A stretch of 64,000 nt of DNA, taken from positions 22,320,001 to 22,384,000 of the forward strand of contig NC_087246.1 in NCBI RefSeq assembly GCF_037042905.1, read 5' to 3'. Every line of letters starts with the position of its first letter. The stretch's first letter is position 1. Shown here piece after piece: positions 41,747-56,069 of this stretch. Source of the stretch: Lytechinus pictus (taxonomy: Eukaryota). The translations under genes were made by a program, and so were the position numbers. The notes under the pieces were generated by a model. That model worked only from the letters and a program-made list of their open reading frames with translations, was not told where the DNA came from and made no database searches.

Positions 41747-42350
41747 GGTTTATTTCCAATTCGTCTAATGCCAATTCGTCCAATTGCCAATTCGTCCAAT
41801 TGCCAACTCGTCTACTATAATTTGGTCTACCATCAGTTCGTCCACTCACCACATGGTCTACTTTCATTTAGTCTTATGCCATTCCGTCTAATAACCAGTT
41901 GGTCCAATAGTCATTTAGTCCATATACCATTTGGTCTAACTGGACTAAGTGTTTTATTGTACAAAATGAATGAAAATGAAATGGATATTAGACCAACTGG
42001 TTATAAGACGAAATGGTCTTGGACGAAGTGGTGATTAGACGAAGTGATGATTGGACAAAATGGTTAATGGACCAGGTGGGTGTTTCATAAAGCTGTTTGT
42101 AAAGTTACGAACGACTTTACGCACGACTGGAACATGTTCTTAGGTCATAACTCAATTACATAGGGATATCACATAGCACAAGAAAAGATCACCAGTCTAG
42201 CGTAAAGTCCTTCGTATCTTACGAACAGCTTTATGAAACACCCACCTGGTTGTTAGATGAAATGTTGATGGACGGAATGGCATTAGACTAAATGAAAATA
42301 GACCACGTGGTGAGTGGACGAGTTGGCAATAGACGAATTGGCAATTTACC
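41747..42350. mobile_element. Palindromic MITE built of ~15-bp subrepeats, with a nested Harbinger-like MITE
   Basis: TGCCAATTCGTCYAA units on the left arm mirrored by TAGACGAATTGGCA on the right arm. Confidence 0.7.
42076..42245. mobile_element. Harbinger-like MITE with GTGGGTG termini
   Basis: TIRs GTGGGTGTTTCATAAAGCTGTT; CAG and CTG flanks; near-identical to 55646-55815. Confidence 0.85.
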
Positions 42351-45728: not shown

Positions 45729-46406
45729 CTGCAGGGAGGGGTGTTAGAAAAGGGAGTAAATAAAAAAAAAAGAGATGGGGAGAAGGGGATGGGAGGGAGA
45801 ATTAAGTGTGAACATTGGAAAAATAATAAGGAAACAGACGATCATCCGTATGACTACATATACCTGGACCTTGCCCATATAAATCTGCAGTAAGCCTCGA
45901 TCCTAAACAGATCTAGCTTTTCGCTTTCTCCACCTTTCCTAATTCTCTTCAAATCGCGGTTCTATTCCTTAGTTTTCGGGGTCAAAGAATCTCATGAATA
46001 TAGTATGGAAGGCAAATGGAAGTACTCCTAAATATACAACGAACATGATCATTGCTTCTAAAATGGCCCTTATAATACCCCCTAAAGTTCTACATTTTAC
46101 ATCCTACCCTGTCTTCAGACGCCCTAATATTTTCAGCCCCATTTTTTTCTGGCCCATATTTCACTTCGACAAGATGTCAAGTTTTGCGATTTGTAACCCT
46201 AAGGTACTGTACATCCTGGAAATTACAACTACCAATCTCGGGTTTTATCATTCTTTTTTGCAAGTTATCATTCACGACGAATAGAACTAGAAACCCCTGA
46301 AAAATATTGATTTTTTTTTTTTTGGGGGGGGGGTGGTTAAATCATATTTGACTCGACAATAGTAGCATTATGAAGATTTTTAGATAGTAGGTCATTTTAT
46401 ATTTAC

Positions 46407-46565
46407 CGTAACAAGACAAGCCTCCTTTATAGCGGGACCATTGTCCGCATCCAGTCCCGGAAAGTGTTCCCGAATATAGTCCCGAAGAACATCTAATTCC
46501 TGCTGTTCATCCGTTTGATCACGGGAATCAGGATCATCGATTGGGGTGGACATCCACTTTCCTAT
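46407..46565 (-). CDS. PIPOX: PIPOX-like exon 6 (IGKWMSTPIDDPDSRD…YIREHFPGL…EACLVT)
   Basis: DPDxRD and HFPGL motifs; Cys at the position of covalent FAD attachment; GATAG acceptor, GTAAAT donor; 159 nt. Confidence 0.9.
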
Positions 46566-46955
46566 CTATCGTTCGAAAAAAACAAACGGAAAAAGGGTAG
46601 CATGTCTCCGAGCATGTCACGGCCTTGATTCCTTACCCGTTATGCAAATTTTTAATCTTTTTAATGAATTGTCCCACAATAATGATGACATATTAATGTG
46701 GTGTATATATCGAACGTTTATACAAAATACTTTGGCGAGGAATAGTGATTTCACGCTTCCTGTTTTCCGACAAAGATGAAATAGATGTATGCTGATGGTG
46801 AAAATATCCTATTTTGAAAGGGTATTCTTTCCTATTGGAAAATAATACAAACAACATTAATGGTAATGATGATGACAAGGATGATTAATAATGTGAAGGG
46901 GGAGAACTTTTATGAAATAGATACATAATTATGAAAAAAATAATGTTCGTTATAC

Positions 46956-47093
46956 CTTCATAAGTCCAGGGTATTCATTGCTTGGACACCCACTGTAGGC
47001 AATTCCATCTCTGTCCAAGTCATTAAAGACTGGAAATTCCGCGTAGGTTCCTTGCACTCTCTCCTTCCAGAATATGTGGTATGCCAGATGAAC
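46956..47093 (-). CDS. PIPOX: PIPOX-like exon 5 (VHLAYHIFWKE…PSNEYPGLMK)
   Basis: EYPGLMK motif; TAAG acceptor, GTATAA donor; 138 nt, phase 0. Confidence 0.9.
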
Positions 47094-47599
47094 CTTACAA
47101 AATCAATAAAGCATTCAACCATTCAATAATAAAGTGGTTGCCTAAAACATTGTCAATATGCACCCAAGCCGGGTGAAGTAAGTGGAGACCTATTTCATTT
47201 CATTTCAATTTCATTTCAAATAAACATTTATTTTCCTCCATTATACAAAATTTCTTCATTATTGTTAACAAGAATTCATATGAAATAAATTTCCATAAAG
47301 AATATAAATATATACATCTTATGTGTACAGAGGAAGGCGTATATAGGTCCCTAGAAGCACATGCTTGTGGCGGGATACGCCTGTGATACTATGATACTTT
47401 CATATGTTCTGTCCATCGCATGTCTAGAGTCTTACACAACAAAGTCGACTACAGCATCTCAATGACTATACACGTGTGGCACTTTGGCTTCCAAGTTTAA
47501 ATGCAGACTTAAATTTAATTCAAGCTACCGGTATAGGACTATTCATAAGTAGGTATCTATACACAATGCTCGTATTTTGTTTATCACATTGCAATGTAC

Positions 47600-47782
47600 C
47601 TGGAGTGATATGTTTAGTCCAAGTTGCTTTATAACTGTTGATGCCCAAGGACCAGGAGCCAGGATGACACTTCTAGTCTGGTACTCACTTCGATTGGTCT
47701 TCACCGTTACCATGGCACCGGGAACAATCTCCAACATCTTCTCCTCATCGTGGAGAACTCCACCTCGTTTCACAAATTCACC
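47600..47782 (-). CDS. PIPOX: PIPOX-like exon 4 (GEFVKRGGVLHDEEK…VILAPGPWAS…LQ)
   Basis: TTTAG acceptor, GTACAT donor; 183 nt, phase 0; GPW motif. Confidence 0.92.
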
Positions 47783-48027
47783 CTAAATTATAATGAAATA
47801 TATTTTTACAATTCTCAATAAAACATTATGTCTAAAGTGAAAGGGTAATCTTGATTACCAATGGAGAGTATAATTATGCAGCTAGGTTTAGAAATTGCCA
47901 AAGTAATGAAAAAATTTATTTGACCCCCGAAAATGATAAGAATTTTCCTGCCAATTACAGAGGCTCCACTTAATTTGTTTATGATAAAACTGCTGAAATG
48001 AATATTCGTCACTAAAAAGATTATTTT

Positions 48028-48276
48028 NNNNNNNNNNNNNNNNNNNNNNNNNNNNNNNNNNNNNNNNNNNNNNNNNNNNNNNNNNNNNNNNNNNNNNNNN
48101 NNNNNNNNNNNNNNNNNNNNNNNNNNNNNNNNNNNNNNNNNNNNNNNNNNNNNNNNNNNNNNNNNNNNNNNNNNNNNNNNNNNNNNNNNNNNNNNNNNNN
48201 NNNNNNNNNNNNNNNNNNNNNNNNNNNNNNNNNNNNNNNNNNNNNNNNNNNNNNNNNNNNNNNNNNNNNNNNNNNN
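48028..48276. other. Assembly gap (249 N) in PIPOX intron 3
   Basis: Run of N. Exon phases on both sides join correctly, so no coding exon appears to be missing. Confidence 0.98.
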
Positions 48277-48311
48277 ATTTAGCTATCTATACGATTTATA
48301 ATGCAATATAC

Positions 48312-48531
48312 CTGGAAAGCATGAAGTGCCTTATTTGCTCGGATATAACCCGCGTGCTGGTAAATGCACAACTCAGAGTCTGCAGAATGTTTGAAGTTAG
48401 GTATCCGAATATTTGCCTCTTCGGCCGCTATCCGCTCCAAACCAGCTCCGGACTTCACCATTGACTGCATAACACGATTCGGATAACCGTCTTCCCATCC
48501 ATCATTAGAAATAAGTAACATCCCAACTTTT
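48312..48531 (-). CDS. PIPOX: PIPOX-like exon 3 (KVGMLLI…AGYIRANKALHAFQ)
   Basis: CACAG acceptor, GTATAT donor; 220 nt, phase 2 to 0; AGxIxAxKALxAFQ is typical of PIPOX. Confidence 0.9.
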
Positions 48532-48543
48532 CTGTGAGTTAGT

Positions 48544-48936
48544 TACGGTGAACGGAGCCTTTAAAGTGCCATCGACTTGACGACTTGACGAGATACTTTA
48601 TCTTGCCATGTCGATATAATAGCCTAATAATGTCGACATGGCGAAATACGTTATCTCGCCAAGTCGACTTATAAAAGGTTATATGTCGACATGGCGAGAT
48701 ATTTGGGCTCTCGCCGGGCCTTGGACACTTCATATCTTGTCATGTCGACATAAAATGTTTTATAAGTCGACTTGGCAAGATAAAATATCTCGCCATGTCG
48801 ACATATAACTTTTTATAAGTCGAATTGGCGAGATAACGTATCTCGCCATGTCGACATAATAAGGTTATTATGTCGACATTGGAAGATAAAGTATCTCGCC
48901 AAGTCTTCAAGTCGATGGCACTTTAAAGGCTCCGTA
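48544..48936. mobile_element. Palindromic IS3EU-like MITE with 6-bp TSD
   Basis: TACGG…CCGTA termini; long TIRs ACGGAGCCTTTAAAGTGCCATCGACTTG; TSD GTTAGT at 48538-48543 and 48937-48942; internal GTCGAC repeats. Confidence 0.8.
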
Positions 48937-49494
48937 GTTAGTAGGTTAATAGAATTTTAAACCTTAAAGTATAATGGAAAATGAGAAAACCCAATCTTGA
49001 TCGGAGATTTAAACCCGTTTTTATTGACATTTAGTAGTCATAGTCCTAGCCATGACAGGTGAACATGGTGAAGCAGAGATTATGCCTACTTTTATTCCTT
49101 GTTTTTCATATATTTTCATTTTTCTCATAACACAATTATGAATGTAAGATCTCAGAATACAATTGTTTATACCTTTGAAAAGGAGTCAGCAAACGAACAC
49201 AATGCACAGGAAGAGTCAATATTGACAACTGATACAACTGAGAGAGAAATGTTCGAATATTTTGTGTACAGCAAATATCCATGTAGGCTAAATGTGAATC
49301 TTAATCCCTATTTGTTCTCGATTCCCGTTTGAGTTGTTGTACTGGTGACTGTAAGGATGATGATGGTAAATGAGAATACTGATGGCGATGACAACGACGA
49401 TGATGATAATAATAATGGTGATAATGAAATCTAGTGTGTAACCATGATACTAATGATGGTGGAGAGGGTAGTGGTGGTGATGATGGTAGGCCTA

Positions 49495-49736
49495 CACTGT
49501 AAAAAAATATTGGGTAAAATTTTAACCACCACGATGGTAATTATGTGTCCAACCATTTTGGGCAGTATTTTACCCAATGTGGGAAGCATATTGTCCAGTA
49601 AGGCTAGAAAAAAATAAGCAGCAATTACTTTAGAATGGGCAAAATTTTCATCACACTAAATAAATAAAAATGCCCAATGTTTGTTGGACACATAAATACC
49701 CTCATGGTGCACATTTACTCAATATTTTTTAAAGTG
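49495..49736. mobile_element. CACT-terminated MITE with TA flanks
   Basis: CACTGTAAAAAAATATTGGGTAAA / TTTACTCAATATTTTTTAAAGTG. Confidence 0.7.
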
Positions 49737-49948
49737 TAATGTTTATTTTTTAAGGAGGTTCACATGATAAAAATTTGTTTCTCGTCGACAAAACGGTCGA
49801 CCGTGGACATGAAGGAGTTAGAATGGTCGACACGCAAAAAATCAATTGCAAAAACGGTCGACACGCAAAAAATCTATTGCAAAAACGGTCGACATTTTTG
49901 CGTGTACATCTATATACTTGAATGATACTGTATGGAGGAGTTACCCAC

Positions 49949-50097
49949 CTCAGCAATTCGGTTTTAGTCTCCTTTTCCAACTCCTCCCATAGTGCATATG
50001 ACTCGGAACTAAATTTTTGAAAGCGTTCGTCTGACTCTGCTAAGCGAGTGATTCTACTGCCACCATGCGAACTACCTCTTGTGTGAGGTAATGAATA
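49949..50097 (-). CDS. PIPOX: PIPOX-like exon 2 (YSLPHTRGSSHGGSRITRLAE…LWEELEKETKTELLR)
   Basis: GSSHGxSRIxR signature of the MSOX/PIPOX family; TATAG acceptor, GTGGGT donor; 149 nt. Only its 3' end appears in the ORF track. Confidence 0.93.
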
Positions 50098-51524
50098 CTA
50101 TACATAATGAAGAAAATATTTTTGAGGAAATAAGCTGAGCAAGTATCAGATGAGAATACAGAAGAGACAGATGAAAACGAAGAAATTGGGAGAGAAGGAA
50201 GACAATCGTGACAATATATAGAGAGGTGACCAAGAGGGAATTTGGATGAAGAGAATGAAACGACCAGGGAGGACAAAAAAAAGAAGTGTTGGGGGAAGGA
50301 AAATAAAAGAATAGAGACAAAAAGTAAGAAATAATTAAAGAATAAAAGAATTAATTAGATATACTGACCTAATTCATATTATAGGCCTACATAACCATAA
50401 CAATAAAAATTCCAACACAATATAATTCTAACCGTAACCAGATAACAGTGGCACTACAGTAGAATAATAAACCAATCATATTTGAGATAATTTTAATGCG
50501 CTTTATTGTATTCTTCTGCATCCATAATTAAAGAGGTAGGCCTACAATAACTTAAACAAAAAATGATAATACAGAAAGAACACAAAATATGATTCATTTA
50601 TAACAAATAAAAATACATTGAGAACACTTTTTGGCGACGAACCAAATACGTGTAGCAACATTCCGAGCAGAATTTTACACTTCTAACTTTATATGATGGC
50701 ATGCACATAACAAAATGTCGAATATATTTTTGATCATGATCTCATGTATAAGCCTGTCCATGCAGACAGTAGTTCATATTTACTTGGGTGAATTGAATTA
50801 TGGGCCTTTTAAATTAGGATCAAAGTGTGTGCATCTTTGTATGAAGAAACACAGATCCTGTAAATCCTTTATTTCAACATGATACTGTATGTTTCTTAAT
50901 ATGGACAACGCCCACAGAATTATACCATCATATTAAAAAAAAACAGTAAATGATAAAATTGGTAATCGTGGTCATGATGGTAATGGTAATTTTATATTCC
51001 TAAAGAAAGTAGAACTCTCTCGCATTGTGAAACTTTCTTCCGAGTGTGGATGATCGTATATTTATATATTGATTTCAAACTAAACATTTTTTTTTTTTAC
51101 AAACTTTTGTCACTGGAATTTTCGACTCAAATTGACATTATACAGTCAAACACTCCTGCCAATTATATTATTGCCAATACATTTTCGCTCAGTGACGTGG
51201 AATGATTTTTTATATTGAACAACGCAGCAATGATTTGAAAATGCTGCGTTGTTGAAAATGCTAGCCTCACAATGAAGTCTTAGTCGAGGGTTGGTGATTC
51301 AGAATAGCAGTTTCATCCAAAGTTTCAGAGCTGACGAAAACCACATATATGTCCTTTGTTAGAGTCACGGACGAAATTGCCGTTCTGATTTACCTACCCT
51401 CAACCAAAAACTTCATTGTCATGAAGGGCATTTGACAATAGATTAGCGAAGTTCCAGAAAGCACCAGAGTAACTGTTGCAAAAACTCCCAATTAAATCTA
51501 GAGCTCCCCCTGTATTCTGACCTG

Positions 51525-51706
51525 GGGGCCGTTTCATAAAGCTGTTCGTTAGTTAAGAGTGACTTTCAGAACGACTGGTGATCCTTTCTCGAGGTAAATG
51601 ATATTCACCATTCATTTTCATTGGTGATTATTTAGCGCGTAAGAAAGGATCACCTGTCGTTCTTAAAGTCGCTCTTAACTAACGAACAGCTATATGAAAA
51701 ACCCAC
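51525..51706. mobile_element. Harbinger-like MITE inserted exactly at the PIPOX exon 1/intron 1 junction
   Basis: ~65-bp TIRs; CTG TSD at 51522-51524 and 51707-51709 (CAG on the gene strand); related to the copies at 42076 and 55646. Confidence 0.9.
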
Positions 51707-51832
51707 CTGTTCTAAGAGTAGAACTCGACGTCCATCTCTCGCGCTGTAATAAGCGGCTGCTGATCCCTCGATGCCCGCCCCGATCACCACTACATCGAAG
51801 ACCATCTCCTTTGTATTTCTGACATCGTCCAT
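51707..51832 (-). CDS. PIPOX: PIPOX/sarcosine oxidase-like flavoprotein, exon 1 (MDDVR…FDVVVIGAGIEGSAAAYYSARDGRRVLLLEQ)
   Basis: GxGxxG FAD-binding motif ending in LLEQ; 126 nt; GTGGGT donor supplied by a MITE end. Confidence 0.92.
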
Positions 51833-52752
51833 TGTGGTTTCCACTTTAAACAACACAGAGTTGGGCGACTTGATAAGAATAGGAAGTTATAGTCCTACTA
51901 TTATAAAGTTATATATCTCATTTATAATCAGGGAAAAATGTTTTGCACAGTCAAGTTGATATTACACGACTATGATATTATTCAATTCGCATATACAAGC
52001 TCTATAATAATTATTAAAATCCTGTATTCGGTTTGTTAAATTAAAGGAGCATTCTAGTTTGAATTCAAATTGTCGGATAATAATGAAAGGGTAGATCATA
52101 CAAAATATGTTTTGTGAAAGATAAGCACTAAAATCTAAAATAAATAGATTGAAATTAAACGACCACAAACAAAATGAGTCCCAAAATAGGCATCAGAAGT
52201 ATATTATTTACTTTGTAGTATTTAATCTCATTATTCATTGTAACTACAAAGTTGACATGCATGTATAATCATTGAAAGTTTCAAATTCTGTATTCTTTAT
52301 ATCAGCAAAAGACTCCCTGACCAAAGCAAACATAAAAACGATTAAAATGGCTATACGATATGATGATTCATAGTACTTACTTTTGCAAGGTTCGCTAAGT
52401 TTTCTGTGGTTTGTAAATTCTAATAAGAAACATTTTCATACAGTGAAAGTATTGCTAAAATGCAAACACTTACCGATACAGCTAGATACACCGCGATACG
52501 GAATGGAAATCAATGGAATTTTTTTTTATTATCTTCAATCGCCAGATCTCACACAAACACACAGAATTTTATACAAACAGAGTTTCTAAAAATCTCATCC
52601 TGAAATAAACATATCAGAATCGTTATATGACCCAATGAATATACCAAGCACGCCCCTCGGTCAAAGGTATGCCCTTATTCTAGTTTCCCTTATTTCATTG
52701 AACATCCTGAAAATGTATTCTTCGCTGAAGAATGTATTTTCAGGATGTTCAG

Positions 52753-55405: not shown

Positions 55406-56069
55406 AGGGGAATTTCATCCTAACAGAAAGTTTGTTGTAAAAATAGCAGAAAAAGTAATAAAAACTATTGGTGAAGGATTGAGGAAAATCCATTAAGGAT
55501 TAAGAAAGTTATTAGAATTTTAAATCTTGGATTTGTGACGTCATAAACGAGCAGCTGCCCCATATGTTATGTAATATAAAATGCATAAATTTAAATCTTT
55601 TAATGGTTTGTGATGACTTACTTTTTCATTTCTTTTTAGGAACAGGTGGGTGTTTCATAAAGCTGTTCGTAAAGTTACGAACAACTTTACGCACGACTGG
55701 AACATGTTCTTAGGTCATAACTCAATTACATAGGGATAACACATAGCACAAGAAAGGATCACCAGTCGTGTGTAAAGTCATTCGTATCTTACGAACAGCT
55801 TTATGAAACACCCACAGGTGTGAAATGATTTGTCTATTGATATACTGAAGGTGCAGTAAAAAAAAATTCTGAGAAAATGAAATTTCATTTCTTTTCGCCA
55901 TTCGATATGTAGGGAATTAGCTGCTCGCATATGACGTCACACATCAAATAATAAAAATTATAATAACTTTTTAATCATTTGATGGATTTTTCTCAAACGT
56001 TCGGCAATATTTTTTATTATTTTGTCTGCTATTTTTACAATAAACTTTTTGTCAGGGTGAACTTCCCCT
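55406..56069. mobile_element. TTAA-flanked (Kolobok-like) MITE in RDH8-like intron 4
   Basis: TTAA-AGGGGAATTTCATCCT … AGGGTGAACTTCCCCT-TTAA, with long arms. Confidence 0.8.
55646..55815. mobile_element. Harbinger-like MITE with GTGGGTG termini, nested in the TTAA element
   Basis: TIRs GTGGGTGTTTCATAAAGCTGTTCGTAA; CAG target. Confidence 0.85.

Follow-up and report, generated by a model that had tools for sequence, protein, structure and literature searches.

A CWG-targeting MITE as the probable replacement of the intron 1 splice donor in the PIPOX-like gene of Lytechinus sea urchins

What becomes of a gene when a transposon inserts into the last codon of an exon, exactly where the intron begins? 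We addressed this question at a locus of the sea urchin Lytechinus pictus, in a stretch of 64,000 nucleotides (nt) that we call the window (NCBI RefSeq assembly GCF_037042905.1, contig NC_087246.1, positions 22,320,001 to 22,384,000 of the forward strand). On its minus strand, the window contains the start of a PIPOX-like (sarcosine/pipecolate oxidase) gene, and the last codon of exon 1 is followed directly by a 182-nt miniature inverted-repeat transposable element (MITE), which belongs to a family that targets CWG triplets (W, A or T) and resembles the NuwaI group of PIF/Harbinger elements. We consider it very probable that this MITE made an old and exact replacement of the splice donor at PIPOX exon 1, by which the messenger RNA (mRNA) was left unchanged.

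The exon 1 junction and its transcript

The gene begins with an ATG at 51832, followed by the flavin adenine dinucleotide (FAD)-binding sequence VVVIGAGIEGS, and the 3' end of exon 1 reads ...GAACAG at 51707 (in letters, TTAGAACAG / CTCTTAGAACAG). The features around this junction are given below in positions of the window; here and throughout the text, a slash within a motif marks an exon-intron boundary or the edge of a target triplet.

51707-51832, minus strand: coding part of PIPOX-like exon 1 (MDDVRNTKEMVFDVVVIGAGIEGS...RRVLLLEQ), with an FAD-binding GxGxxG motif and a Pfam DAO match, identical to the NCBI protein
51707-51709, minus strand: first copy of the target CAG, which is the last codon (Gln) of exon 1
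51525-51706, minus strand: 182-nt CWG-targeting MITE of apparent NuwaI / PIF-Harbinger type, 6.0% from the family consensus, with no indels
51701-51706, minus strand: GTGGGT at the 5' terminus of the MITE, the splice donor in current use (joint of the mRNA contig; CAG/GTAGGT in L. variegatus)
51548-51553, minus strand: ACTAAC within the far arm of the inverted repeat, owing to a substitution specific to this copy (consensus ACTTAC)
51522-51524, minus strand: second copy of the target CAG
51516-51521, minus strand: GTCAGA, which served as donor before the insertion and has been displaced 185 nt into the intron (compare the GAACAG/GTCAGA units of S. purpuratus)
50098-51706, minus strand: intron 1, 1609 nt, GT..AG (the joint of the RNA contig skips 1609 bases, CT..AC on the forward strand)
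49949-50097, minus strand: exon 2 (YSLPHTRGSSHGGSRI...), with the donor GAG/GTGGGT

The MITE starts with GTGGGTTTTTCATATAGC and ends with GAAACGGCCCC (51706 to 51525, minus strand), and it makes up 182 of the 1609 bases of intron 1. Its inverted-repeat arms are 71 nt each and 86% complementary, and RNA folding of the region gave one long hairpin of -113 kcal/mol (z = -12.8 versus shuffled sequences). Within ACTAAC, the putative branch-point A occupies position 51549, which is 27 nt ahead of the G in the duplicated CAG, and exon 2 starts at 50097, preceded by ..tgtatag. We found no haplotigs or paralogues of the exon 1/MITE site in the L. pictus assembly. The coordinates of an initial annotation, which had been made from the letters of this DNA only, were all correct on the minus strand, and its description of a MITE flanked by a CAG duplication at the conserved LLEQ/ intron position agrees with this anatomy.

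For the transcript, RNA was placed on positions 46300-51950, using three raw-read RNA runs and one run of Logan contigs (X1). A 1080-nt RNA contig from run X1 (depth 46.6) showed five joints, all of them GT..AG on the gene strand, and one of these joins 51707 to 50097, skipping 1609 bases including the entire MITE; this is the junction to which the initial annotation had pointed. The RefSeq protein of L. pictus has the same junction, LLLEQ/YSLPH. When exons 1-6 of the reference allele were joined, they gave an open frame of 325 residues, which coincides in every letter with the first 325 residues of the NCBI L. pictus protein "peroxisomal sarcosine oxidase-like" (P0024, 387 residues). If the old donor (51521) were used instead, the frame computed on the reference would enter the MITE and terminate there at a stop 18 codons further on. 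PIPOX exon 2 likewise has GTGGGT as its donor (GAG/GTGGGT), which is thus a normal donor in L. pictus. Among junction-spanning 31-mers, one of the three sampled words was found in public runs (six DNA runs from three samples), which is a weak sample.

The orthologous site in other genomes

Orthologues were reached through a search with the exon-3 peptide, a full-length relative and then a cluster look-up, which led to XP_041457334.1 of Lytechinus variegatus (locus L069) and XP_011682180.2 of Strongylocentrotus purpuratus (locus L070). Another exon-3 match, P0020, was rejected as a source of orthologues, being on a 963-nt contig without exon 1, and a search of the protein collection with the open reading frame of exon 1, aimed at filled or empty alleles, returned distant genomes only.

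In L. variegatus, exon 1 is 98.6% identical to that of L. pictus and likewise ends with TTAGAACAG. Directly after GAACAG, at the same base as in L. pictus, stands the left arm of the MITE (GTAGGTGTTTCA..TCATAACGCTGTTCGTATAGTTAAGAGGCGACTTTAAGAACGACTGG). The site reads CAG/GTAGGT, and the GT of the MITE is the only donor left at the exon end; L. variegatus intron 1 has neither the right arm of the MITE nor ACTAAC, and it lacks the second CAG and GTCAGA as well. The annotated protein is full length, has the same LLLEQ/YSLPH junction and belongs to the same 90%-identity cluster. GTAGGT is a better donor than GTGGGT, and it stands in a conserved full-length gene. Because the insertion is common to both species at the same site, it is old, predates the split of L. 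pictus and L. variegatus, and is neither a private nor a damaged allele. The mRNA joint from 51707 to 50097, together with the presence of the insertion in L. variegatus after loss of the old donor, bears out the earlier proposal that the GTGGGT terminus of the MITE supplies the donor.

The remainder of the L. variegatus intron has its own history. About 55 bases of the MITE are followed there by a different element with a GGGGCCCGTTGCAG end. This GGGGCCCGTTGCAG-ended element (L069:1693-1813) sits at a CTG inside the MITE, as a nested insertion with deletion, and it replaces the right part of the MITE and about 320 bases of intron 1. Homology with L. pictus intron 1 resumes only about 500 bases into the intron. 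Introns of the two species are 78-88% identical, a divergence of about 15%.

In S. purpuratus, no MITE is present at intron 1 of the PIPOX-like locus (L070). Exon 1 ends with ATAGAACAG, followed by GTGGGTCAGATTGTAG, and intron 1 contains, at L070:1635-1773, 4.8 copies of a 28-nt unit, each of which reads GAACAG/GTCAGATTGTAG. GTCAGA is therefore found next to GAACAG in a genome that has no MITE at this place, and this is the empty site CAG/GTCAGA that the initial annotation had predicted. The same outgroup bears on the origin of the intron. An intron follows ..LLEQ / ..LIEQ in S. purpuratus without any MITE, and the exon-1 reading frames of other genomes (P0002, P0003, P0008, P0009, P0015) continue past LLLEQ into V (GTx), which is consistent with an intron at the same position. 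Because S. purpuratus has the intron without the MITE, intron 1 predates the insertion. The MITE thus replaced a donor at this intron and created no intron, and the suggestion that the element generates an intron here has to be given up in the light of these two comparisons.

The repeat in S. purpuratus has a peculiarity of its own. Its 28-nt units copy the last six bases of the exon plus GTCAGA, which makes four decoy exon-intron junctions, and a GTGG lies between exon 1 and the repeat, so that the authentic donor is GTGGGT, the same hexamer as at the Lytechinus MITE end. In an alternative history, which we considered and rejected, the lineage began with a GTGGGT donor like that of S. purpuratus, and the MITE inserted into the CAG within GTCAGA; neither of the L. 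pictus junctions is reproduced in this way.

From these observations, we propose the following course of events. In a common ancestor of L. pictus and L. variegatus, a non-autonomous MITE would have entered the terminal CAG codon of PIPOX exon 1. The 3-base-pair (bp) duplication would have left one CAG in place as the last codon of exon 1, and the end of the element facing the exon, which starts with GTGGGT, would have rebuilt a usable donor exactly at the old exon end, while the old donor GTCAGA was displaced 185 nt into the intron. Splicing from the transposon GT to the old acceptor at 50098 would leave the mRNA unchanged, and for that reason the insertion could be tolerated and fixed, presumably by neutral fixation. 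Whenever a GTGGGTG end faces the exon at a CAG/GT boundary in this orientation, the donor should be rebuilt in place.

The MITE family, its ends and its target preference

The PIPOX MITE belongs to a large family, with 3852 first-look candidates in the genome, the best 40 of which are 89-93% identical to the PIPOX copy. Letter-perfect termini with CWG on both sides were found in 573 copies, and an alignment of 30 copies with their flanks gave the 182-nt consensus. The ends of the family occur in two forms, GTGGGTG (29 of 60) and GGGGCCG (30 of 60), both preceded by CWG; 63 of 75 ends have CWG flanks. Only the GTGGGTG form yields a GT, and 1274 ends in the genome read CAG/GTGGGTG... The view that the donor is a family property therefore stands for the GTGGGTG ends and fails for the GGGGCCG ends, which have no GT. 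As for ACTAAC, it is indeed present in the far inverted repeat of the PIPOX copy, as had been noted, but it arose by a substitution private to that copy. The consensus of the family has ACTTAC, and at 51550 the alternative letter turns up in reads that come from other copies.

The change to ACTAAC at 51548-51553 is mirrored at 51678-51683 (GTTAGT for GTAAGT), so that pairing in the hairpin is preserved. Both changes may have been present in the source copy, or one arm may have been used to correct the other. Copies often adjoin head to tail and share one CWG (L003, L008, L009, L010, L024 and L026, near 1500), as would follow if every insertion recreated, at the ends of the element, a sequence resembling the target. 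All three RNA-seq runs contained abundant reads derived from MITE copies (51543-51685), and many of these reads showed "opposite strands" joints at the hairpin, which may be a foldback library artefact or may come from transcription of double-stranded RNA.

We assign the family, as a high-copy CWG-targeting MITE, to what appears to be the NuwaI group of the PIF/Harbinger superfamily (PHIS, PIF/Harbinger-ISL2EU-Spy), because CWG duplications and inverted repeats starting with GGG define NuwaI. The Harbinger transposase domain PF13359 gave at least 150 matches in the genome. Many of these (e.g. L051-L067) lie in open frames of equal length (446 residues) and score almost the same, a pattern suggestive of an autonomous Harbinger family that was active until recently. 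A search of a phage collection gave no match and is irrelevant here.

We then read the bases outside the CWG at 60 ends. The base is C in 72% at position -1, A in 52% (G in 3%) at position -2 and G in 40% at position -3, whereas background frequencies are 19-31%. Read from both sides, the preferred target is a 9-bp palindrome, GAC/CWG/GTC, which recalls the 9-bp palindromic target of PIF in maize. The reconstructed PIPOX site, GAA/CAG/GTC, agrees with it at 8 of 9 places. The CAG/GT half of this target is the core of the 5' splice-site consensus, from which we infer that such boundaries are natural targets of the family. Since GAC/CWG/GTC resembles a 5' splice site, the landing of the MITE at the PIPOX boundary would be explained, with target mimicry as the likely reason. 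The motif CAGGT occurs about 1.7 times per kilobase (kb) in 270 kb of L. pictus sequence, and given thousands of copies in the genome, we expect other splice donors to have been hit as well.

The two flanking triplets of a copy often differ. Among the 573 copies with perfect termini, 167 have CAG on both sides and 182 have CTG on both sides, so that the middle base agrees in 349, while it is discordant in 224 (39%); a first sample had given 10 of 26 discordant. The middle base tracks the type of terminus (21 vs 10 for CAG/GTGGGT, 22 vs 7 for CTG/GGGGCC). We speculate that an excised element carries 3-nt flaps from its previous site, that these flaps pair with the staggered target, as happens in piggyBac, and that the W:W mismatch so produced is resolved at random. 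A simple flap model predicts about 62-67% agreement, compared with 61% observed.

Three further repeats of the window are listed below.

55646-55815, plus strand: MITE of the sister family, located upstream of the gene, each end being GTGGGTG
42076-42245, plus strand: sister-family MITE with GTGGGTG at both ends, flanked by CAG and CTG
51252-51497, minus strand: interspersed repeat in intron 1, older than the MITE and unrelated to it (1420 first-look candidates, 74-83% identity)

The initial annotation had described two elements, at 42076 and 55646, as related copies of the PIPOX MITE. They do exist, with GTGGGTG at both ends and CWG flanks, but they are 70-72% identical to the PIPOX MITE and represent a sister family. 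This sister family has 2838 candidates, and because its copies are 95-98% identical to each other, it appears to be younger and to have been active much more recently than the family of the PIPOX MITE. The repeat in intron 1 begins about 25 nt past the old donor GTCAGA.

Competing readings and known systems

Several points weigh against a donor replacement by the MITE. Of 995 exon letters in the RNA contig, 36 (about 3.6%) disagree with the reference, and the contig hence comes from another haplotype; since a MITE-free allele would also yield this mRNA, the contig alone cannot show splicing of the MITE-bearing allele. The three raw-read RNA runs had zero depth on the PIPOX exons and are uninformative on unspliced or intermediate RNA. 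Splicing in L. variegatus is known from the annotated gene model and not from reads. An autonomous partner with a matching inverted-repeat core was absent at the 30 Harbinger transposase loci inspected, within +-1.5 kb only. Finally, a plain 3-bp duplication would not by itself predict CWG triplets that are discordant in 39% of copies.

Among the other explanations, the one that survives best, though we consider it improbable, is that we are dealing with genuine introners in this family, and above all in the younger sister family, which has GTGGGTG at either end, and that the PIPOX case is one of their by-products. On paper, the GT terminus and the CAG duplication together give GT...AG and restore exactly one CAG, so that one splice site comes from the element and the other, the AG of CAG, from the duplication. 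The 167 letter-perfect copies of the form CAG/GT...CAG and the 1274 ends noted above add to this, as does a report of introners from a second sea urchin species, S. purpuratus (PMC12130899). As far as the letters go, the introner potential of the family thus looks real on paper. However, when 36 copies with flanks were excised in silico and open frames were sought across the joint, none of the 36 lay in a coding exon, in a sample that is small and biased to near-consensus copies. The best candidate, L003, is an SRCR exon with a GTAAGT donor 40 nt before the MITE, which places the MITE inside an intron. In addition, PIPOX intron 1 is older than the insertion, the pyrimidine tract at the 3' end of the element is poor, the consensus is without ACTAAC, and half of the ends are GGGGCCG and have no GT. 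The idea that the family is spliced out at sense CAG as introns was accordingly not confirmed in this small sample.

A different proposal is that the MITE is removed first, as an intron of its own (51706 to 51522, branch point 51549), which regenerates CAG/GTCAGA and makes the site a recursive one with a zero-length exon. All the parts are present in L. pictus, namely GTGGGT, ACTAAC 27 nt before the CAG, and then GTCAGA; the hairpin would bring both ends together, and the final mRNA would be the one seen. We regard this as very unlikely. The ACTAAC motif is owed to a private substitution. From the branch point to the AG, pyrimidines account for only about half of the bases, and a further AG is encountered 8 nt past the branch point. 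L. variegatus keeps an intact gene without the right arm, the second CAG and GTCAGA, which argues that the arrangement is dispensable and unconserved. Known recursive splice sites serve very long introns, and this intron has only 1.6 kb. The complete intron or recursive splice site of the initial annotation is thus left unsupported, its parts being deleted in L. variegatus with the gene intact and its ACTAAC being private.

That the reference allele is damaged, null or weak, and that normal mRNA comes only from empty alleles in other individuals, would fit the different haplotype of the RNA contig and the weak sample in which one of three junction words turned up in other DNA runs, but it is hardly credible given the same insertion at the same site in a second species, which makes it old and almost certainly fixed, a copy 6% from its consensus, which fits the intron divergence of about 15% between the two Lytechinus, six exons of the RNA contig that are all open in the reference, and an L. 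variegatus protein that is full length and in the same 90%-identity cluster.

If donor replacement is the right reading, the PIPOX site offers a clean and datable animal case in which the end of a transposon takes over the donor of a conserved intron, with the site filled in two species and empty in the outgroup. Recurrence would be expected, since the target resembles a 5' splice site and one of the two end forms starts with GT, and these same two properties are the requirements of an intron-generating transposon. Sea urchin genomes, annotation, RNA-seq and population data are good, so the step from an element tolerated at a splice site to an element that makes introns is directly testable. 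A bolder proposition, which we consider improbable, is that the CWG-targeting Harbinger-type MITEs of Lytechinus with GT ends, together with their preference for GAC/CWG/GTC as a mimic of the 5' splice site, are a working system for intron remodelling and intron generation, homing to exon-intron boundaries and sense CAG codons. If this were true, insertions would be tolerated since the GT of the element and the AG of the duplication permit exact removal, and the young sister family would be creating introns today.

Among known systems, the closest to the PIPOX MITE is the NuwaI group, which has CWG duplications and inverted repeats that often start with GGG (Han et al. 2015, Mob DNA, PMC4482050). 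Its hosts are fishes, a beetle, a crustacean, a mollusc and an anthozoan, and echinoderms are not among the 16 host species (PMC4482050). The family described here shares the CWG flanks, the inverted repeats starting with GGG (GGGGCCG in this case) and an animal host. Unlike NuwaI, the PIPOX MITE is non-autonomous and has 182 nt, its family has a second end form, GTGGGTG, that does not start with GGG, and the CWG triplets are discordant in 39%.

Huff and co-workers reportedly described introners, in 2016, as intron-generating non-autonomous DNA transposons. Introners are also treated by Gozashti et al. (2022, PMC9860276), and they have since been reported in S. purpuratus and Styela clava (Gozashti et al. 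2025, PMC12130899), with the S. purpuratus family unnamed in the main text of that paper (PMC12130899). As in introners, the element at PIPOX brings the GT and the duplicated target brings the AG, and its removal would restore the coding sequence. Unlike introners, it lengthens an ancient intron and swaps the donor, and it creates no intron.

Transposons that are spliced from pre-mRNA through sites at their own ends are said to include Ds and dSpm of maize and Tc1 of Caenorhabditis elegans, from the work of Wessler and co-workers and of Rushforth and Anderson. The likeness to PIPOX is that transposon termini are read as splice sites and the damage from the insertion is lessened. The difference is that the splicing of Ds, dSpm and Tc1 is mostly imprecise and concerns recent mutant alleles, whereas the PIPOX case is exact, lies at the native exon end and is conserved in two species. 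In the tunicate Fritillaria borealis, introns derived from MITEs are reported to have been found by Henriet and colleagues in 2019. Both are animals with hairpin-forming MITEs at intron boundaries; the introns of Fritillaria borealis are non-canonical and were created by MITEs, while at PIPOX the splice sites are canonical GT..AG and the intron is old.

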